Below, in pieces: positions 4,374 through 63,443 of a DNA stretch of 64,000 nucleotides. The position numbers were made by a program, and so were the translations under genes. Under the pieces are notes generated by a model, which saw nothing but the letters and a program-made list of their open reading frames with translations, did not search any database and was not told the DNA's origin. Location of the stretch: sequence record LT960552.1. One strand, written 5' to 3'. Position 1 is the stretch's first letter. Every line of letters begins with the position of its first letter.

Positions 4374-4704
4374 AATGGATTCTATTTATACACAAGAACT
4401 TCTAGATAAACTATCTTCAATTTTAGTTGAATCAGATTTTGAAGATGATGAAGATGGTGATAATGATGAGAATATTAAATTTATAAAAGTTGAAGATGGT
4501 GATTGGTTTGATGAGGGTAAATGGTCTTATCGTGATGATACCTTTTTCTTTACTGATTTAAATGTATATGTAAATGTAGGACAATCCAGATCAGGTTCTT
4601 ACTATACAGACTATTATTATGATGATCCAAGTTTTTCATTTGTTGAACCTAAAACACAAACTGTAGTTACTACAATTTATGTACAAATTAAGGTAACACA
4701 ATGA
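4374..4704 (+). CDS. acidic hypothetical phage protein
   Basis: GGAGA SD before MDSIY; contains QSRSGSYYTDYYY motif common in small phage proteins. Confidence 0.7.
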
Positions 4705-5372
4705 AAAGTTATTGTTTAGACATTGAAACACTTGCTACTCCAGAATTATCAGGATATAGTATTGTAATTCCTAACTACGCTATTGTTAAAATTCCAGAAG
4801 TGCTAACTTCAGATTTAGAATGGATGTATGTTCAACTACCAATACAAGATCAACTTGATGTTAGTTTGAAGACTGATGCACCTACTATGAATTTTTGGTT
4901 TAATATTTGTGCACAAGAATTTCCACTTTCTTTATGTGAAATGCAAAAATCATTCACATTAAAGAATCCTAAAATTATTATCAATGGTGAAGAATCTGAT
5001 TCTTTAAATGTACCACTAATGCTTAAAACATTTATTCATGGTTCAGAAAAAATTGATAATAATGTAAAAGTATATGGTAATGGTTGTCATTTTGATTGTT
5101 CAATCTTACAAGATAATCATAGAATTTTATTCGGAGAAGGAAATTTATGGCATTATAGTGCTCCTAACAATATTAGAACTTTACGTTTATTACTAAATGA
5201 ACAACAAGAAGAAGATATGAAAGAAGCCGTGCTTCCAGTACTAGAAAAATTTTGTTCAAGTTTTAATGAACAAGGATATACTTATGATTTATGTTTACAT
5301 AATCCAATTTTTGATGCAGCAAAAGAAGCGTTATTCGCATCGTATGTGCTAAATCTTAAAAAATCCACTTGA
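4701..5372 (+). CDS. DEDDh 3'-5' exonuclease
   Basis: LDIETLAT, YGNGCHFDCSIL, HNPIFDAAKEA motifs. Confidence 0.75.
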   Translation: MKSYCLDIETLATPELSGYSIVIPNYAIVKIPEVLTSDLEWMYVQLPIQDQLDVSLKTDAPTMNFWFNICAQEFPLSLCEMQKSFTLKNPKIIINGEESDSLNVPLMLKTFIHGSEKIDNNVKVYGNGCHFDCSILQDNHRILFGEGNLWHYSAPNNIRTLRLLLNEQQEEDMKEAVLPVLEKFCSSFNEQGYTYDLCLHNPIFDAAKEALFASYVLNLKKST

Positions 5373-18454: not shown

Positions 18455-21400
18455 ATGACTCTCGAAATGATTGTTTATATGTATGGTGAAGCATCACTTA
18501 TTTTCAATTATATCAATACTCATAACTTAAATGTTGACAGTGTTAAATTAATATATTCTAATACTTCTAATACTAATACTATGGTTATATATGTTTGGTG
18601 CAATGAAGAACAAAAAGAAGAAATGATTAAACTAAAAAATATAGAGGATACTGTACTATAATGAAACTAATTGAAACATCTGAAATGAAATCGGTACAAT
18701 ACTATGGCTTTACTTTTATAGTTCCGATTTGTATTAAATTTGCGGCAGTTGATGCAGATGGAACATTAATGGGATTCCAAGAAAAACCTATAGTTGAACA
18801 TAGTTTGCAGATTTGGGATAATCCAACATGTAGCGATATGTATGATATGGGTAAAGTGGATCTAGAAGGTCAGTCATGGGAAAGTACTTTACAAGTACTG
18901 AACTAAAATGTATAGTACTGCACAAGTTGTAGTACTTTTTAATTAAGGTAAAATTATGGTATTAAACATATTATTAAAATACTTATATTTTCAACTTACT
19001 AAATTAAAAAATTGTAAAATATTTTATTTTATAGCAATATGTATGCCAATTGGATTATTGTTAAATGCAATATTATGTGATTTTATTTTTAATGCATCAA
19101 TATTGACAAAATCTGTAATAATGATTATATTATTATTAATACAAATAGGTTCAATGTCCTATTATTTTTATCAATCACGTAAGGGATATCTATGAAATAT
19201 TTTCGTGTTAATGAAACTGATGCATCTGGTATTGGTTTAGATTTTTGGGCATATTTTGAATTACAAGATACTGATGATATCGATGAAGCAATTTCATTAT
19301 TTGATGAATTGAATCATTGGGTATACTCATTAGATTGCCGTCGAACTAAAGCGGAAGAGATTACCGAAGCACAGTATAAAACTGGTTTACAGTTCAATAA
19401 TTTGTATAATAATTATCATGGTCTTAATTATCTACGTATTAATTTTAATCTGTATCCAACATATGATATGGCAGTAATGTTTGCAAATAAAGAACATCCA
19501 ACTGGATATGTTCGTATTGGTCATTTGAATTATCATAATGTGTACAAAGTGAATCAAAATGGTGATTTCATGTTTGTATATCATCATTGGATGGATCGTA
19601 TTGGAAAATTAGGTGTATAATAATGATTGAAGTTTATTATAATGATAAAACTGGTCGTGTAATGCCAGATGGTCATGTTATTCAGTACTGTACTGAGCAA
19701 GTGCAAAAAATTGAACATGTTGATGAAGTTGGATCTGAATTTTTGTTGATGGCATATCGTTATGCAATGAAAATTAATAATATCCCACATGATACTATTC
19801 GTTTTCATTTTGATCATGAAGATTATGGACATAATACTGTAATACTTGATGAAGATTATAATATGATCTGTCCAGAAGGTGAACGTTTTATGTATCCTAA
19901 TTTGAATATTAAAATGTTGATGGAATTCTTTTGATGATAACTATAATTTTTGATAAAGACAATGGAATATCAATTCCAGATGGTAAAGTGGTAGAGTTTG
20001 CTAATTCAGTACTTGAAAAAGATGAAAGTACTATTATTATTAGTCAACAGCTTATCCTTGATGCTATTCGTGCTATGATTTTTCAACGTTCATACAATGT
20101 AGATAATATAAAACTTGAAGTACATGATAATGGTGTAATAACTACAGTTAAAATTAATAGTGATTGTAGTTTAGAAAACTGGAAACCATTTCCAGAAATA
20201 CAATCAAAAATGTTATATATTTTATGTGGTGGAAAATGATAAAAAATAAAGAATTTATTATACGGTGTGATTGTCGCGATCATAGAGAACATAGTATTCA
20301 TATAGGCCAGTACAATAGTGGTGATCAATATGATGATGCAAATCTTGGTCAATGTTTAATCAATATGTCATTGGAGATACGTCTTCCTTGGTATAAGCGT
20401 GTATTGGTTGGTTTAAAATATATGTTTGGATATACTAATCATCTTCACTATATTGATACAATTGTAGATGTTGAAGTACTAAAAAATGTAGTTCAAAAGT
20501 TAGATGATAATCGTACTGATGAACAAAAACTAATTTCAGCACAAGATCGCCAAGACACTACTTTTGAGATTTTATGATGGAAGTGTTAAATAATATTTTA
20601 AAACTTGACTATTTTTCAAACTTAGTTTATAGTACTACTGATAATAAAAGTATTTTTCAAGTTAAAATCATATACCCTGATTTTGAAAAATATTTAATAA
20701 TTAATAAAATAACATCAAAGCGTGACAAATATTGCACCTTAATCACGGATAATTTTTCATTAATATATGATGGCATTTCATTTATGTTGATAGATAGTGA
20801 TGGTATTTTATTAGATAAAATTGAACCATCCATATCTGAAGAATGGTTTTTTCAACAATCTGTTGTTAAAAATTTTAGTGCAGTTGAATATGAAGATATA
20901 AAATTGTTAAAAACTGTTCATTCTAAATTATGGGGTGTATAATATGCTAAATCCAATTTTTGAAACAATGCTAGATCCAGATAAAGCATATATGAGATTT
21001 GAACGCTATGATGGTGTGCGTGGAATATTAACCATAAGTACTGAAACGCATGAAGTTCAAATAACAGATAGTTATATAAAATTGGACGAAGTACGTTATA
21101 ACCAAAATTTAGTAAACTCATATCATGGTGTTCCTATATACCGTAATTTAATTGTAATGATAGATTATAACTTATTTTTAGAATCAAATAGCGATGAAGT
21201 ACTAGGAGTATCTAAAGATGATGTTACTATTATTCTTGAATATTATAAGAGGTTAGGATGAGTAGATACAACATACTTTCAAATTTTGATGTTAATGATA
21301 TGAGAAGAACATTTGATGAATTTTATGAATATAAATCTGTAGTTAATGATGAAAAGTATATGTGTTTTTCAAGTACTATTGAGTTATTAGATGATCTTGT

Positions 21401-29230: not shown

Positions 29231-29312
29231 GCTGCCTTCCCATAATTGGTATTGGACCGCACTTGTAATGCGGCGGGGAAACCCATTCTCGGTTCAAGTC
29301 CGAGGGGTAGCA
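29231..29312 (+). tRNA. tRNA-Thr(TGT) with long variable arm
   Basis: Loop CTTGTAA, V arm GGG-GAAA-CCC; ends A-CTA. Confidence 0.8.
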
Positions 29313-29465
29313 CTAATTAGTTATTATATGGCCGAAGTCACACTCAATGACTATAAATTTGAGTGTTTTATAGAGATTATACAGCAGAAGCTGTTTCGAA
29401 GAAATTCTGAGGCAAGTCAGCCAAGAAACAGAATGATGAAATAAAAAGTACTACGGTACTTTTAT

Positions 29466-37765: not shown

Positions 37766-38822
37766 ATGTTTGAATTTGACAGTGTTCAAGATTTTGTTTG
37801 TAAATCTTTAATAGGAAAAGTACTTGTTAAGGTTGATGATGTTGAACTTTTAGAAACTATAGTTCGTGCTCATCATGATTCTAGTACTAATTCTATTATT
37901 GTAGAATCAGAAACATCACAAATATATATCTATAATAGTTCTTTTGTGATAGTTGATAACTTGGTTGAAGTAGATTGGGGAAACTATAGTTTACAAGTAG
38001 AACCTAAATTTGGTATTTCAAGTTGGTTATCCAAATCTGAAAAAAATGAAGATTATGGAGATGTATTCAGTACTGACGAATTCTTTGAACATGTTGAATC
38101 TGGTATGTTCATCGATTCAGATGGACATGGATATCCAAGTAATGGAACTCATCATATTTTCACCTGTTTGTCAGTACGTGATCTTGCAGCATGTAAATAT
38201 AGTAAAACTGTATCTCACATCATATGGTATAATAAATGACTATAAAAGTAAGTGGAAAAGTAACTGAAGTAAAATCAGTTGAAGTTGATATTAGTATTGT
38301 TGAGTTAGAAAAAGCTTCATCAAATTTGATTCCAGGTCAGCTTTTGATTATATTGAAAAAGAAATTAGTTCAAAAACTTATTGAGAAAGATGGTTCTTTA
38401 GATAATGCTGAACTATCATGGAATGATAATTATTGGGAAATTTTTGATTATTATGATTACCATCATAGAGAAAATAAATTTATAAAACTTCGTGATTTAA
38501 ATGATGAAGAAAAGTACGCATTATCTACATTTAATGATGTATCTGAACTATTCAGAAAATTACAATGACAGTACAAAAATTTGAAAAGTTACCTATCCAG
38601 ATTTATGCCCTTGAATGGACTGGTAATAATATTAATGAGTTAAAAGACTTTGGTAGTCCAAACGAAGTAAAGATCGATAATATGGGTCATTGCAAAGTTG
38701 AAACTTTAGAAGGTTGGTTAACTGCATCGGTTGGTGATATGATCATCAGAGGTGTACAAGGGGAAATTTACCCATGCAAACCGGATGTGTTTGCATTAAC
38801 GTATCGTAAAATTGAGGAATAA
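37766..38822 (+). other. three hypothetical genes (37766, 38236, 38565)
   Basis: Coupled ORFs; last has the common phage motif ETLEG...GDMIIRGVQGEIYPCKPD. Confidence 0.75.
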
Positions 38823-38825
38823 AAA

Positions 38826-39170
38826 ATGTCTCACTAGATTGATAAAACTTGGATATATGTATTTGTCCGTACTGATTTACCAGTAGAACAGATTGTAGTA
38901 CAATCAAATCATGCCGCCTATGAAAGCGGATTAGCATTCGACAATAACAGTAACAGTACTGAGACTAGTTCTCTAATAGTTATTTCGTGTAAGAATAAAC
39001 ATAAGTTACAAAAAGCATATGATGAACTTAAATCTAATGGTATTGAGTTAATTCAATTCCATGAACCAGATTGGAATTATGGTTTAACCGCCTTTGCTAG
39101 TGCTCCAGTAACTGAAGAACAGCGTAGTATCTTCCGTAAGTTTCAACTTTTCCGTGGAGGTGCTAAATGA
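38826..39170 (+). CDS. Pth2-like protein with in-frame TAG at codon 4 (38835-38837)
   Basis: GAGGA SD, ATG; after the TAG: YVFVRTDLPVEQIVVQSNHAA...FHEPDWNYGLTAFAS; missed by the ORF track. Confidence 0.7.
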
Positions 39171-39733
39171 TTTATCCTAACACTTTCGAAGAATTGCTCC
39201 AAGTAATGAATAGTACTGAACAGATGAAAGGTCTTAGTGTTCATGCACATGGGCTTATGGTGGTTGAACAGTACAAAGTACTAATTTCAGAATTAGATTC
39301 TGGATAGGGCGATTCTATATTACTTGAAGTATATAGTAAAATTAAAAATAATATTTTACCTGATGATATTGTATTACGTTACCAAGAGTTTCATGATTGT
39401 GGTAAGCCAATATGTCGTGTAGTTGATGATGAAGGTAAGGTGCATTTTCCTGAACATGCAACTATAAGTGCAAATGTTTGGGACAGGTTATATCCTGATG
39501 AAAAAATCATTCAAGAGTTAATTCGAAAAGATATGACATTTCATCTTGCAAAAGCTGATGAGTTTGATATAATATGGAATGATCCATTAGCACCTACTCT
39601 ATATGTTACTGCATGGGCTGAAATTTTAGCGAATTGTACAATGTTTGGTGGGCAGGATAGTACTTCTTTTAAAATTAAAAAGAAAAAGTTAATCCAAGCA
39701 GGTAAAAAGTTCTTAAACTCTTTACCTATATAA
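39167..39733 (+). CDS. HD-domain protein with in-frame TAG at codon 47 (39305-39307)
   Basis: ATGA overlap; VHAHG...FHDCGKP...HFPEHA; in frame with ORF 39440. Confidence 0.7.
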
Positions 39734-39775
39734 ACTATCGGCGGCTTTTGTCGCCAGTTTTAAAAGGTCTTCATT

Positions 39776-40759
39776 ATGGAAAACACAATTATTGTTGATA
39801 TTTTTAAAGGTGCGACCCAAGAAACTGTTTTTGTTTGTAATATAAAAAACCAGTACTTTTCACCTGAACAAACGTATAATATTCATGAACATGAATATAT
39901 TAAACGGTATGATTCCCATTTATATCGTAAAATCGGTGAAAAAAATTGCCGTGAAAGTTTAAATGAAACTATGGTTGGTTATTTTGTTAGTTTAGCTAAC
40001 ATTTTAACCCAAACATATAATTTAGGTAAACTTGATAGTGTGATCTTCAACTCAAGTGGCTATGGTGATTGTACTGGTAATACCTTCATTTTAAGTACTA
40101 ACGAATTTTCACAAAAGGAAGAAGATAAGATGATTATTGATGATAAGGATTTACTCTTTAATATGTATAAAGAAACATTTCCTGATCACGAATTAAATTT
40201 ATAAGGATGTATTATGATTACTACTGAAAATATAACACTTCATGATGATTTAGATGAATCATATGGTTCTCCATATGGATTAGAATATAAAGGATATATT
40301 TTTGTATTCAATTCTATTGAAGACCGTGATTTATGGATTAGCGATTGCAATGATGATGATTTGGATTATATTATTGAAAATGAAAGCGTAGAAACTGAGG
40401 ATTAAACAATGGGTTCGGATGTAAAAGCTTCAATTAATGTAAAACTTGTTAAACAGCCACGTGGCATGAAAGGTGCTAAACCTGATATTGAACAAATTCA
40501 TATCGATTTGTGTTCTATTGTTGAAAACGAAACATTTTCTATTAATAGTAATACTAATCTTGTTGCTGAACCTGAATGTCGTTGGCATAGTATTGATGCA
40601 GATATGAAAAAATTATCAGTACTATATCCTGGAATTTTATTCACGGTTAACGTTAGTATTCCTGATTATGAAGTAAATGAACTGCATTACTTCTATGAAG
40701 GCAAAACTCACGAAGCTGTGATCACATTCTCACCATTCGATGAAGAACTTTTGAAATAA
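39776..40759 (+). other. three hypothetical genes
   Basis: ORFs with SD sites. Confidence 0.7.
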
Positions 40760-40777
40760 ATAAAGTACCACAAAAGA

Positions 40778-40806
40778 TGAAACAGTATATTTTTTTGTGG
40801 TATAAT
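40778..40806 (+). promoter_or_regulatory. TGAAAC-N14-TGGTATAAT promoter
   Basis: Upstream of tRNA-Arg. Confidence 0.8.
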
Positions 40807-40815
40807 ATTAGTATT

Positions 40816-40889
40816 CTCCTGTTAGCTCAATTGGATAGAGCAACAAACTTCTAATTTGTAGGTTACTGGTTCGAATCCAGTATGGGAGA
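40816..40889 (+). tRNA. tRNA-Arg(TCT)
   Basis: Loop CTTCTAA; ends A-CAA. Confidence 0.92.
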
Positions 40890-40939
40890 CAAACAATATA
40901 GCCTAAGCATATGCTTAGGTTTTTTTATTGGTAAAATAT

Positions 40940-42163
40940 ATGAAAGAATTAACATATCCAGAAGAAATTTTTAAAGCACTTGAAGATATACATACAAAGT
41001 TCATTATACCTAATGGTAAAGTTGATAGATTTGTATCTTGGTATGATTTGGACCGTGATTTAACCGATTATGGATTTGAAATATATCCATATAAAAATGA
41101 TGAATCACCAGATCAAATATGTTTGTATGGAAGTATAGGTACTACATATATAACAAATCACACTCTTATTTTTTTTATACATGGTGGCGGAATTCCTCCT
41201 TCATATATTGATGATTATATAAATCTTACCGAAGAACAACATTTTCAACTTGGAACAACTACCTTCCTTGCTGGAGTTTTTGAATTTAATGATTTTAAGA
41301 AAATACACGAATACTTTAAGAAGATTACATAATGGAAAGAATATTAGTTTTTAATTATGAATATGAAACTCATGTTGAATACCCAGGTGGTCCTGGTTGT
41401 CTTGGAAAAATTGAATGGAACGAAATTAGTGAAACGATATTTGAAATATTCGAATTACAAACTGATGGTACATATAGATTAATAACTCAATTTGACCAAA
41501 CAGCATATACATTTGATGAAATATGTAACTATCAATACGATTTATATTTGTTAGTACTAACAAATGAGGCATATCATTTTAATAATATTCATGAAGAAAG
41601 AGTTGATCTGTTTGAAGAATTGTGTAAGAATGAACTTAACACTTTAAACAACCGAATGTGGATTGAGTACTGGATACAGTACCATCATACTAGATGGATA
41701 AATGATTATGAAGAAAAACAAGCCAGAAAAGCCGCTGAAGAAGCCGAAAGCCAATCCATTACCGTGGCTTCAACAATGGTTGAAAACGCCTCAGATGCCT
41801 GTCAGTGAGCTTCCTGAAGTTAATAAAAATAAAGGGGTTGACAATGAATCCAAACAGTAGTATAGTACATAAATCAACAAGACTTAGTGATGAAACAAAA
41901 TCTCGGCTGAAAGAAATGTTAAATCCATTAAGTAATGTGGTATTTGTCAACTTCAATAGGAAGTGATTATGTCTCATTTTACAAATATTGTTAAATTAGA
42001 TGTTCAGAATGGTTATTGGTACGATGTTTATATGGAAGCAATTAATATTGCTAAAATGCTTGACAAGAACGTTGAATTCTTGTTTAATGGTGTTCAAATT
42101 ACATTGAATAAAAATTCAAGTCCTGAATGTTTCGTTAAACAGTATGGAAAAGCGGTAATTTGA
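40940..42163 (+). other. three hypothetical genes (40940, 41332, 41969)
   Basis: ORFs; TTGACA promoter near 41838. Confidence 0.65.
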
Positions 42164-42194
42164 ATTCCAACTGTTTGAAAGTACTAAAAAAACT

Positions 42195-42223
42195 TGAAAC
42201 AGTTTCTGAAAGTGTGGTATAAT
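42195..42223 (+). promoter_or_regulatory. TGAAAC-N14-TGGTATAAT promoter
   Basis: Upstream of the CUA tRNA. Confidence 0.8.
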
Positions 42224-42240
42224 ATACGTATTGAAAGAAT

Positions 42241-42316
42241 GCCTTTGTAGCTCAGTGGTTAGAGCGGGAATCTCTAAAATTCTTTGTCGTCGGTTCGAGT
42301 CCGACCATCGGCACCA
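42241..42316 (+). tRNA. amber suppressor tRNA (anticodon CTA)
   Basis: 76 nt; stem GGAAT/ATTCT, loop CTCTAAA; canonical D and T arms; CCA encoded; two acceptor mismatches. Confidence 0.8.
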
Positions 42317-42353
42317 AAATATAAGTGAGCTTTAGTGGTTCATTGGAAACAAT

Positions 42354-42440
42354 GCGGGTATGAGGATGGCGTACCTCAAACAGACAAAATACGTTCTGTT
42401 GCTGAAAGATGCTAAGATGGTTCAATTCCATCTACCCGCC
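42354..42440 (+). ncRNA. tRNA-like RNA with 12-nt anticodon-arm loop
   Basis: GCGGGTA/TACCCGC, GAGG/CCTC, AACAG/CTGTT, T arm; framed by CTTTAGTG/CACTAAAG. Confidence 0.55.
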
Positions 42441-42784
42441 GCACTAAAGGTAGCATCGAAAGATGAGAAAATAACACGAGGCGTCGGAATACGCCTACAC
42501 TTATAATCGTACAATGGGGCATATAGCCGATAACACCCTTTGGCTTCCAACGCGGTGTAGGGTGCGGAATATCCCCGCCATGCCAACTTTAATGTTGCGT
42601 AAGCTAATGCGTCGTAATGGGAGTTAAGATGAAACCTGATTATATTGAATGTTTAGCAAGTGGTGCTGGACATAATTATCAAAAGCAGTCTATACCATCA
42701 GAGTATATCTGTGGTACTGAAGGTTTAGAACCAACTAAAGTAGTACAATGTCAGTACTGCGGTGAAGAAAAGAAATAATTAAAC

Positions 42785-42880: not shown

Positions 42881-43282
42881 ATGAAAATTGAATTAGAATA
42901 TCCATATAATCAAGATTGGAAAAGTGGATACCTTGTGGTAAATCCAGAAGGAAGAAAAACCGTAATACTATTCAATAGTGATAAAAATAGATCTTCAACT
43001 GCATATGCAAGATATTTGCTTGCAGTAAAAGAAGGTCGATATTTAACTGAAAATGAACAAGCGGATCACAAAGATACCGATAAAACAAATGATTCTATTG
43101 ATAATCTTCAAATTCTAAGTATTGAAGAACACAAAGAAAAAACTATTTTTGAATTTTCTGGTAAAACATATATTGACTTTATATGTGAAACATGTAATAA
43201 TCCTTTTAAGCGTGAAATTAGGCAAGTAAAGACCTATACAAAATATTGTAGTAGAGAATGCTCATACAAACGAACCAAATAA
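42881..43282 (+). mobile_element. HNH homing endonuclease
   Basis: ADHKDTDKTNDSIDNLQIL; C-terminal CxxC...C motif. Confidence 0.85.
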
Positions 43283-60568: not shown

Positions 60569-60650
60569 GCGGGATTAGCTCAGTGGTAGAGCACTTGCCT
60601 TCCAAGCAAGAGGCGAATAGGTTCCATCGGTTCGAATCCGATATTCCGCT
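60569..60650 (+). tRNA. tRNA-Gly(TCC) with expanded variable region
   Basis: Loop CTTCCAA; 15-nt V region; ends T-CAA. Confidence 0.82.
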
Positions 60651-60769
60651 CAAATTAAACAAACAATAAGGTAAATCCTATGATGCTATAGAAAAACAGT
60701 ACTGGTCCTCCTGATAACTTTAATTCAGAACAAAACACTAAATTAAATATTATCCAAAAGGAACATACT

Positions 60770-61096
60770 ATGTTAAACAAAGAAAAATATATTACTGTAA
60801 AAAATACTTGGAAATTAGAAAAAGAGCATAACATTTTCGACCATGTGGTTTATAATGTTATTCGTGGCCTACCATCAGATAATGGGTTTGCACCAATTAC
60901 TGATAAAGGAAAACTTCAAGCAAATAATAACGACCCGTATAATATGTACAACTATGCAGTTCTTGAATTGCATTATGAGTTGAATGAAAAACGATACAAT
61001 TATGAAAAAACAGTACAACATTATTCTAAACTATTTGGCATTGAATTTACACCTGAACTTATCGAAGTAGTACTTACTTTGATTAAAGTTAAATAA
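60770..61096 (+). CDS. hypothetical protein
   Basis: AAGGA SD. Confidence 0.75.
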   Translation: MLNKEKYITVKNTWKLEKEHNIFDHVVYNVIRGLPSDNGFAPITDKGKLQANNNDPYNMYNYAVLELHYELNEKRYNYEKTVQHYSKLFGIEFTPELIEVVLTLIKVK

Positions 61097-62096: not shown

Positions 62097-63443
62097 ATGA
62101 AATCACTAGTAGCTATGGTAAAAGACAAAAAAGTCTATTTTAGCCATTATCAAAACAATGAACTATGGTACAGTACTGAATGCGGATTTATGTTTCCGGT
62201 TCCGGTATCTGATACTGGTAATGCAGAATTTAAAAATGAAGATAAAGCTACGTTCTTTATGCGTTGGATTCGGAAACATCTTGAAATGATTGCTGATGAA
62301 AGTCAATCACAATCAGTTAATGGATGATTTGAAAATTATACATGATGTATTAAATGTGTACTACACCACTGGTGAAGATGCTCTACATTATGGCAACGTA
62401 TATTATGAGTACTGGATGCGACAATGCACCTTTATGGGAACTGGCTTTAACTTTACGGATGAATACATTCAGTTTGGTGAAACACGTTCCGATATAGATA
62501 AAGTACTTGATGAAGAATCACATTTTCAATTAAGTACTGTGTATAATTTCTACGACCTAACGTTCGAAGATATTACAGCACTTAAAGAAATCTATATATT
62601 CAAACGCGGGGAACCTACACCATAGGTTCCCTTTTTTATATCTGGAGTTTATGAATGGAAGATATTAATTCGACTATAGTAAAAAATACAAAGATAGTTA
62701 GAACATTTGAACAAATATCTTTTGACGATATTAAAACATACTTACCACATCTTAATGTAGTTAGTGGTACTAAAGAGTCAATGACAGGAAGTACAAAATT
62801 GTTTAGTATTTTCTTTTCAGATAGTGAATCTGTATTAGTCTCACGTGATGTTATCATGTATATATTTGATAAAACTTTTGTTAAATTTAATACTAATATT
62901 ACTGAAGAACAAATGTTCCAAGATAGTACAAGAGTTAATTATGGTAATCTTGCACCAGAAACTTTACCGTACTTGAGAGAGTTAATACAACTACTTGACC
63001 ATTTATGGAAATAAATTATGAATGTATTTGAAACGTGTTTTTTATATGCAAGTAAGGGTGATTCAAATAAAACTATTAGAAGTACAAATGACGATAAAAT
63101 TCTTTTCTCTTATAAAATACTAACTGAGTTTGATTCTGTAATAGAGCAAAATGTATGTATATTCATGATTGTAGTATATGTTGAAGATGATACTTTTATT
63201 TTTTCATTTGGTATATCTGAAGACTATCCTGATATTGGTATTTCAATTATGAAAGTACAAGGTAATATATCATTGCATTCCAGTGATGTATGCAACGTAG
63301 AAGATTTGGAAGCACGTTTATTCCAAATAGAAACTATTGTAGATGTACATGATTTAGATACTACGATGATAGATAAAATGTATAAGCTTCGTGAAATATA
63401 TTTGAAGAAAAAAGATGAAACGGTGCTGAATAATCTGGTATAA
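62097..63443 (+). other. four hypothetical genes (62097, 62320, 62655, 63018)
   Basis: Three carry the EE-x-x-FQ motif; terminator 62609-62637. Confidence 0.7.

Follow-up and report, generated by a model that had tools for sequence, protein, structure and literature searches.

We analyzed a 64,000-nt window of the genome of the Yersinia jumbo phage fHe-Yen9-03 (LT960552.1, record 248001-312000), which contains a tRNA gene with anticodon CUA and two coupled genes on the + strand, each interrupted by one in-frame TAG codon. ARAGORN detected the 76-nt tRNA at 42241-42316 (+), and the Rfam tRNA model gave a score of 60.5 bits (gathering score 29), flagging exactly two non-standard acceptor pairs, 4:69 and 5:68 (U4-C69 and U5-U68). 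The tRNA is of class I, with A73 and an encoded CCA, and is preceded by 17 nt by a promoter-like site (TTGAAA-18-TATAAT with an extended -10, 42194-42223 (+), 11 of 12 matches), which is annotated as -35/-10 in the record but is a consensus match only. Although ARAGORN labels this tRNA as a pyrrolysine tRNA, it is a canonical cloverleaf with a G18G19 D-loop, a 5-nt variable loop and a TTCGA T-loop, and does not appear to have the atypical architecture of Pyl-tRNA. Orthologs are present in Yen9-04, BF, six pEa phages, CBB and GAP32, and homologs in Xoo-sp13, XacN1 and Arash. The two acceptor-stem mismatches are conserved in Eneladusvirus and CBB, whereas the GAP32 stem is perfect.

The first interrupted gene is a Pth2-like gene at 38826-39170 (+), with 114 sense positions including the TAG and a TGA stop at 39168-39170. 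A Shine-Dalgarno (SD) sequence, GAGGA (38814-38818 (+)), lies 7 nt before the ATG at 38826, and the in-frame TAG is codon 4 (38835-38837 (+)), followed by A. No ATG, GTG or TTG occurs in frame in the 110 codons after this TAG. The second is an HD-domain gene at 39167-39736 (+), whose ATG overlaps the Pth2 stop as ATGA and whose stop is a TAA at 39734-39736; its in-frame TAG is codon 47 (39305-39307 (+)), followed by G. PHROG 14850 covers both pieces of the HD gene. Thus, the tRNA, the two interrupted genes and their coupling, as proposed in the initial annotation, are confirmed.

Predicted functions of the two proteins

A profile of the Pth2-like family matched the Pth2 structure 2zv3 (E 5e-12), and 43 of 57 family members matched Pfam PTH2 (PF01981; best E 1e-21), although the window protein alone is below the Pfam cut-off (20.8 bits against 23). 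The AlphaFold model (pLDDT 90.9) has the Pth2 alpha/beta fold, with TM scores of 0.70-0.78 to 2zv3, 1q7s, 3erj and 1xty, and R-x-D-L...Q-x-x-H-A and T-A...P motifs are shared with archaeal/eukaryotic Pth2. However, the GK loop carrying the catalytic Lys of archaeal Pth2 (probably Lys18 in Sulfolobus) is absent from the phage family, with Gln/Glu at the aligned position, while R11, D13, Q22, H25, E76 and T84 are conserved instead; the chemistry may therefore differ.

For the HD protein (189 codons), the best matches by sequence profile and by structure were class II CCA-adding enzymes, but the similarity is weak: a PDB profile hit to the class II tRNA nucleotidyltransferase 3wfo (E 1e-3), an NCBIfam TIGR02692 hit far below its cut-off (E 3e-5), and, for the model of a full-length homolog (pLDDT 96.5), a best Foldseek match to 3wfo-3wfs (E 4e-3, TMq 0.55-0.66). 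Atlas neighbors are also CCA enzymes. The HD-x-GKP motif is present, and H27, H75-D76, H87/H91, D116 and H120, corresponding to the H...HD...H...D metal ligands, are invariant or near-invariant in 52 sequences, 10 of which matched Pfam HD. No PolyA_pol match, and hence no nucleotidyltransferase head, was found. The two domains are fused in both orders in other phages. The initial annotation described a translation-rescue operon, which is plausible but not shown; tRNA 3'-end maintenance is the safer name.

Conservation and rarity of in-frame TAG codons

Both TAG codons are invariant in eight phage genomes from independent laboratories, representing two to three genera (Eneladusvirus, Mimasvirus and Kaldavass), while neighboring codons change. 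Synonymous sites are near saturation (dS up to 0.95), and dN/dS is 0.08-0.17 on both sides of the TAGs (0.10-0.17 for the Pth2-like gene; 0.08-0.16 before and 0.14-0.17 after the TAG in the HD gene). An independent wastewater metagenome contig from 2023, at depth 32, also retains both TAGs and the tRNA. The TAG of the HD gene is found at the same position in three more distant loci.

Terminal TAG is rare, as the initial annotation had noted. Of 127 modelled + strand ORFs in the window, 88 end in TAA, 36 in TGA and three in TAG; of these three, one is the N-terminal piece of the HD gene, one lies over tRNA-Ser, and only 62290-62625 is a real gene. Just beyond the window, however, TAG terminates g466, g467 and g476, so it is rare as a stop in this phage but not abolished. 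The initial annotation also cautioned that in-frame TGA/TAA codons in the window leave decay or assembly error as a competing explanation, which was not confirmed: a scan for coding-like frames lacking a start after their 5' stop returned only the TAGs at 38835 and 39305. Two further TAG frames, at 20167 (TTG directly followed by TAG) and 35315 (promoter-like sequence), were rejected. In the 104 kb of this genome examined, the only other stop that would need read-through is a candidate third gate at 60680-61096 (+), in which ATG ATG CTA TAG (TAG at 60689-60691) is followed by 26 codons in frame into gene g457 (own ATG at 60770, PHROG 22448). AAGGT-N-ATG-CTA-TAG is conserved in BF, CBB and GAP32, although in BF the leader is out of frame with g457.

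Early stop codons in divergent phage homologs

Distant homologs in ME3, Arash, pT24, RsoM2USA, Xoo-sp13, RAS14 and XacN1 all open with M-x(-x)-TAG, whatever the domain order. To assess the generality of this arrangement, we examined 62 clusters of IMG/VR homologs, 57 of which have an ATG, 1-8 codons and then a stop (hereafter, the gate) ahead of the Pth2-like and/or HD domain. Of 76 such gates, 73 are TAG, three are TGA and none is TAA, whereas among 2027 control frames of the same loci 21% have TAG as the bounding stop (binomial p 7e-46). The gate rate is 64% against 5% in controls (p 1e-57). The base after TAG is A in 62 of the 73 TAG gates (85%), which, following the work of Bossi and of Miller, is probably the context best suppressed in E. 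coli.

A tRNA(CUA) usually lies within 4 kb: it was found within 10 kb in 35 of 55 TAG-gated clusters, at a median of 1.6 kb. The other 20 show none within 10 kb, but whole genomes were not scanned, and in Xoo-sp13 the tRNA lies 200 kb away. Interestingly, two of the three TGA-gated clusters carry tRNA(UCA) and none carries tRNA(CUA) (Fisher p 0.004), although this covariation rests on three lineages, and one cluster has TAG gates but only a UCA tRNA in the locus. The suppressor tRNAs of the 62 lineages are too diverse to form one family. Ungated homologs in isolate genomes and megaplasmids have no suppressor nearby.

A proposed suppressor-dependent translational gate

Taken together, these results make it most likely that the two genes are under a suppressor-dependent translational gate, and we hold this reading, which rests on comparison rather than on expression, proteomic or charging evidence, with high confidence. 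When charged, tRNA(CUA) would compete with RF1 at the two UAG codons and the full proteins would be made; without it, translation of the first gene would end after a tripeptide and, because the HD start overlaps the Pth2 stop, the second gene would also lose its coupled ribosomes. The stop codon would thus work as a private codon that ties synthesis of putative tRNA 3'-end enzymes to the phage's own suppressor. Partial recoding, as proposed in the initial annotation, fits, since only two to three genes are affected and TAG still terminates a few genes, for which an efficient suppressor has a cost. The acceptor-stem mismatches of the tRNA and the G following the HD TAG are less easily reconciled with this model. 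The inserted amino acid is tentatively Lys, a guess resting on A73 and U35: the nearest paralogs of the tRNA are tRNA-Lys(CUU) of Arash-like phages, and Phe/Lys in this phage, at only about 60% identity, and the residue aligned to codon 47 in ungated homologs (Val in Arash and ME3) lies in a variable linker and is uninformative.

The purpose of the gate is only inferred. A homeostatic or dose control, in which enzymes acting on charged tRNA ends are made only in proportion to charged suppressor, is tentatively ranked first; a feed-forward antidote to the read-through load created by the suppressor, and a timer or checkpoint delaying the enzymes until phage tRNAs work, are only slightly less plausible. 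More speculatively, the cassette may be a self-contained regulatory device of a new type, in which a private codon read by a low-abundance phage tRNA reports the charged state of tRNA 3' ends and sets the level of two enzymes acting on those same ends, forming a closed loop. On this view, orphan suppressor tRNAs of standard-code phages would be regulators rather than decoders, and such cassettes may be the seed from which genome-wide stop-codon reassignment in phages evolved.

Alternative explanations were also considered. It is possible, though doubtful, that the gate is real but the tRNA is mainly a weapon or counter-defense, causing read-through of host UAG stops (which hosts seem to use far more than the phage does) or replacing host tRNAs attacked by defense nucleases, with the two enzymes as an antidote made in step with it. 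In favor of this, the enzymes appear to belong to tRNA-repair and ribosome-rescue families, and Iyer et al. place phage PTH2 in rescue after tRNA cleavage (PMC7824862). On the other hand, the cassette also occurs where the suppressor is the only tRNA in 12-20 kb (four IMG/VR loci and the MAG contigs), no PADLOC family matched, and no host effect was measured here.

It is very unlikely that the phage tRNA is dispensable, with ATG-x-x-TAG acting as a leader mini-ORF and ribosomes re-initiating at the near-cognate codon (ATT/ATA) after the stop, or with host near-cognate tRNAs giving enough read-through. The codon after the stop is Ile (ATH) in 35 of 76 gates and Val in nine, and AUU may serve as a rare bacterial start. 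However, Asn codons follow 19 gates, Thr and others follow more, and BF, CBB and GAP32 have AAT where Yen9-03 has ATT. This reading cannot explain the TAG at codon 47 of the HD gene, and leaves unexplained the near-exclusive use of TAG, the adjacent tRNA(CUA), and the TGA gates with tRNA(UCA).

Reassignment of TAG throughout the genome or in a block, as in crAss-like and Lak phages, is less likely still. A suppressor tRNA with in-frame TAGs is the signature used to call recoded phages (Borges et al., 10.1101/2021.08.26.457843), and terminal TAG is rare in the window, but only two to three ORFs in the 104 kb examined (the other 248 kb were not scanned) contain an in-frame TAG, and TAG terminates several real genes. 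Moreover, the ±10 kb around the cassette in the 62 lineages shows no excess of TAG-interrupted frames (six TAG, eight TAA and nine TGA), and the six TAG frames, one each in six loci, were rejected as antisense or non-coding, without SD sequences. Finally, although annotators of every record split or truncated the genes and in-frame stops are the usual mark of decay, pseudogenes and sequencing or assembly errors are excluded by the conservation of the TAGs, the low dN/dS and the recurrence of the gate in 57 of 62 lineages.

Comparison with known systems

Many large phages that use the standard code carry suppressor tRNAs with no known target, as stated explicitly for XacN1 (PMC5852040), yet XacN1 ORF364 opens with SD-ATG-AAG-TAG. 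The present analysis names a conserved target and gives a simple rule, a stop at codon 3-5 that matches the anticodon of the tRNA; we found no paper describing this arrangement. Gene callers systematically truncate or miss such genes. The gate would offer a natural, compact, orthogonal translational switch, would link suppressor tRNAs to tRNA 3'-end repair and hydrolysis, a current theme in phage-host conflict, and may represent the intermediate stage proposed for the evolution of recoded phage genomes.

With regard to the proteins, the Pth2-like protein has the predicted fold of archaeal/eukaryotic Pth2 but lacks the GK loop, and the HD protein weakly resembles the HD domain and tail of class II CCA-adding enzymes (E. 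coli Cca; the Aquifex A-adding enzyme 3wfo-3wfs) but stands alone at about 185 aa, or is fused to Pth2. In crAss-like, Lak and other gut phages (Ivanova 2014, Borges 2022, Peters 2022), a phage-encoded tRNA(CUA) or tRNA(UCA) reads in-frame stops of phage genes in a host using the standard code, as inferred here, with a proposed role in the timing of translation; however, hundreds of in-frame stops occur there across late and lytic genes and the stop is lost as a terminator, whereas here two to three genes are affected, the stop sits at codon 3-5 as a gate, the targets are always the same two putative tRNA-end enzymes, and TAG still terminates some genes. In the autoregulation of prfB (RF2), an early in-frame UGA serves as a sensor whose decoding outcome sets the yield of a translation factor, as may the early stop here, but prfB escapes by +1 frameshifting and senses release-factor activity, whereas here escape would be by a dedicated suppressor tRNA and a feedback loop is only a hypothesis. 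Laboratory amber mutants with suppressor hosts, and the T4 psu suppressor tRNAs, make expression conditional on an amber suppressor tRNA, as inferred here, and phage tRNA genes can mutate to suppressors; those are mutations selected in the laboratory, whereas the arrangement described here is natural and conserved under purifying selection across about 60 lineages.

Genomic context and structure of the cassette

Yersinia phage fHe-Yen9-03 (LT960552.1, 352,596 bp) is a RaK2-like jumbo phage of Eneladusvirus, and the window corresponds to positions 248001-312000 of this record. The region is AT-rich (about 31% G+C), nearly all of its genes lie on the + strand, and ARAGORN detected 20 tRNA genes in it. 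Two of these, tRNA-Thr(UGU) at 29231-29313 and tRNA-Gly(UCC) at 60569-60651, are each 83 nt long with an extended variable region, which is unusual for these class I isoacceptors.

ARAGORN identified a 76-nt tRNA with anticodon CUA at 42241-42316, for which the Rfam tRNA model gives a score of 60.5 bits (gathering score 29) and marks two non-standard acceptor pairs, U4-C69 and U5-U68. CCA is encoded, and a TTGAAA-18-TATAAT site with an extended -10 ends 17 nt upstream of the tRNA. A homing-endonuclease-like gene (42881-43282) lies 0.6 kb after the suppressor tRNA, and the stretch between them (42320-42620) has no called gene and no Rfam match. The Pth2-like ORF is preceded by GAGGA and a 7-nt spacer, starts with ATG at 38826, continues with TCT CAC TAG (TAG at 38835-38837), and then remains open to the TGA at 39168-39170. 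No ATG, GTG or TTG occurs in frame after the TAG. The HD ORF starts at 39167 and overlaps this stop as ATGA, contains a TAG at 39305-39307 (codon 47), and ends with TAA at 39734-39736. In the deposited record, the Pth2-like gene was not annotated at all and the HD gene was annotated as two fragments.

Conservation of the in-frame TAG codons

The in-frame TAG codons reflect neither gene decay nor sequencing error. We aligned the region from eight phages (Yen9-03, Yen9-04, pEa_SNUABM_12, BF, CBB, GAP32, Kaldavass, and XbC2; two named genera plus an unclassified phage) and found both TAGs to be invariant, although the neighbouring codons change (TCT CAC, ACG CAC, GCA CAA, and GCT CAC before the first TAG, and ATT or AAT after it). 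Nei-Gojobori estimates against BF, CBB, and XbC2 gave dN/dS values of 0.10-0.17 for the Pth2 part, 0.08-0.16 for the HD part before its TAG, and 0.14-0.17 for the part after it, with dS reaching 0.85-0.95. Moreover, a 41-kb contig (depth 32) from a 2023 wastewater metagenome covers 38600-42400 with 14 substitutions and one 6-nt deletion, none of which is located in either TAG or in the tRNA.

We next examined the use of TAG in this genome. A codon-usage model trained on the long ORFs of the window selected 127 + strand ORFs, which end in TAA (88), TGA (36), and TAG (3). Of the three TAG cases, one is the N-terminal piece of the HD gene, one lies over tRNA-Ser, and only 62290-62625 is a real TAG-terminated gene. 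A search for coding-like frames of 60 or more codons that lack a start in their first 30% returned exactly two stops, TAG 38835 and TAG 39305, and no TAA or TGA. A looser scan added one candidate gate (60680-61096): at 60680 the sequence reads ATG ATG CTA TAG, followed by 26 codons (including a conserved S-T-G-P-P stretch) in frame into g457 (PHROG 22448, unknown function), which has its own SD and ATG at 60770. AAGGT-N-ATG-CTA-TAG is conserved in BF, CBB, and GAP32; however, in BF the leader is out of frame with g457 and ends just inside it. The next 40.6 kb of the record hold no further gate, but TAG terminates g466, g467, and g476 there. Thus, judging from the window and this adjoining region, TAG is rare as a stop rather than abolished, and this is not a reassigned code. 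Genes ending in TAG (62290-62625 in the window, and 1100-1270, 1331-1648, and 4555-4770 in the sequence L120) would be extended if the suppressor is efficient; at 62625, the TAG sits inside a terminator-like hairpin, and read-through would add 17 residues.

Distribution of stop-gated homologs

A tblastn search with the C-terminal piece of the HD protein revealed distant homologs (39-45% identity) in other large phages. It is notable that every one examined opens with a start codon, one or two codons, and TAG, whatever the domain order: MT-TAG in ME3, ML-TAG in Arash, MK-TAG in pT24 (a Pth2-HD fusion), ML-TAG in RsoM2USA, MKK-TAG in Xoo-sp13 (an HD-Pth2 fusion), and MK-TAG in RAS14 (an HD-Pth2 fusion). 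ME3 has a tRNA(CUA) 420 bp upstream. Salmonella phage Arash has one 460 bp downstream (2362-2436 of its locus L009), which is annotated as tRNA-Phe but has anticodon CUA according to ARAGORN. Xanthomonas phage Xoo-sp13 has an unannotated one (1497-1572 of its locus L016), and CBB, GAP32, and XacN1 have one each. Other translation genes were also observed next to the cassette, namely a valyl-tRNA synthetase in RAS14 (L014:3180-3333) and a glutamyl-tRNA amidotransferase-like gene in Xoo-sp13 (L013:11-457).

A scan of IMG/VR with an HD alignment resulted in 80 loci, which form 62 clusters at 90% identity or less. Pth2-like and HD domains are neighbours or fused in 76 of the 80 loci. At least one early gate (ATG, 1-8 sense codons, a stop, and then the domain) was found in 57 of the 62 clusters. 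Of a total of 76 gates, 73 are TAG, 3 are TGA, and 0 are TAA; the stop is codon 3, 4, or 5 in 69 of them, and in 43 there is no canonical start after the stop. As a control, we analyzed 2027 other open frames of 100 or more codons in the same loci. Their 5' stop is TAG in 21%, and an ATG lies 1-4 codons upstream in 5.3%, with no TAG bias. The gate rate differs at p 1e-57 and the TAG share at p 7e-46, and the six TAG hits among the control frames look non-coding. In addition, the base after a TAG gate is A in 62 of 73 cases, which is probably the context in which amber suppression is most efficient in E. coli.

Association with suppressor tRNAs

A tRNA(CUA) lies within 10 kb in 35 of 55 TAG-gated clusters, at a median distance of 1.6 kb, and 41 of 42 lie within 3.7 kb. 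Of 500 tRNAs in these loci, 42 are CUA. Interestingly, two of the three TGA-gated clusters carry a tRNA(UCA) (200 bp upstream in the IMG/VR locus L091) and none carries CUA (Fisher p 0.004). Some cassettes (IMG/VR loci L038, L053, L068, L076, L095, and L096) have two tRNA(CUA) genes in tandem, and L038 has both a CUA and a UUA (ochre) suppressor. In genome assemblies, MAG contigs show MT-TAG together with a tRNA(CUA) about 150 nt downstream, whereas homologs in isolates (Sphingomonas, Pseudomonas nitroreducens, and two Pseudomonas megaplasmids) have neither gate nor suppressor. Several cassettes are located where the suppressor is the only tRNA in the locus; therefore, the three parts travel as a unit.

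The tRNA of fHe-Yen9-03 is class I, with G1-C72, A73, and loop CUCUAAA. The two acceptor mismatches are shared by Eneladusvirus and CBB, whereas GAP32 has a perfect stem. No clear paralog was found, the nearest being tRNA-Lys(CUU) of Arash-like phages and Phe/Lys in this phage, at about 60%. Lysine is our best guess for the inserted residue, because A73 and U35 appear to be LysRS determinants. With the gate at residue 3-5 of the protein, the identity of this residue probably matters little.

Predicted functions of the two proteins

The profile of the Pth2-like family matches solved Pth2 proteins (2zv3 at E 5e-12, and also 1q7s Bit1 and 1xty), and 43 of 57 members match Pfam PTH2. The predicted model of the protein encoded in the window (pLDDT 90.9) superposes on Pth2 structures at TM 0.70-0.78. 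However, the GK loop that carries the catalytic Lys of archaeal Pth2 is absent, so the substrate or chemistry may differ. The HD family keeps the His/Asp ligands. Its best matches by three routes, although weak, are all the C-terminal HD/tail part of class II tRNA nucleotidyltransferases: 3wfo in the PDB profile search (E 1e-3), TIGR02692 in NCBIfam (E 3e-5), and 3wfo-3wfs in Foldseek (TMq 0.55-0.66, from a model with pLDDT 96.5). ESM Atlas neighbours agree. Thus, both proteins appear to point at tRNA 3' ends. A complex prediction gave no answer; the fusions in both orders argue that the two proteins work together.

Proposed mechanism and comparison with known systems

Comparative analysis shows that the stop is a conserved feature specific to these genes and that it matches the anticodon of a co-inherited suppressor. 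We infer that charged tRNA(CUA) competes with RF1. If RF1 wins, a tripeptide would be released at almost no cost, and the ATGA-coupled HD gene would lose its ribosomes. If the tRNA wins, both enzymes would be made, and the second gate at codon 47 would then act on the HD gene. As to why these enzymes might be gated, three readings fit the data: dose control or feedback on enzymes that act on charged tRNA ends, an antidote scaled to the read-through load of the suppressor, or a timer.

Full-text literature searches found no description of this gate. Iyer et al. noted PTH2 in jumbo phages but not the gate (PMC7824862). The study of Xanthomonas phage XacN1 reports two CUA suppressors and states that no target genes could be found (PMC5852040). 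Nevertheless, the annotated start of XacN1 ORF364, an HD-Pth2 fusion, is an internal ATG, and AGAGGA-N8-ATG-AAG-TAG lies upstream in frame (L121:500-560, in the XacN1 locus), so this gene is a likely target of the XacN1 suppressors. Recoding by phage suppressor tRNAs is already known from gut phages, and the arrangement found here is a restricted, gene-specific variant of it.
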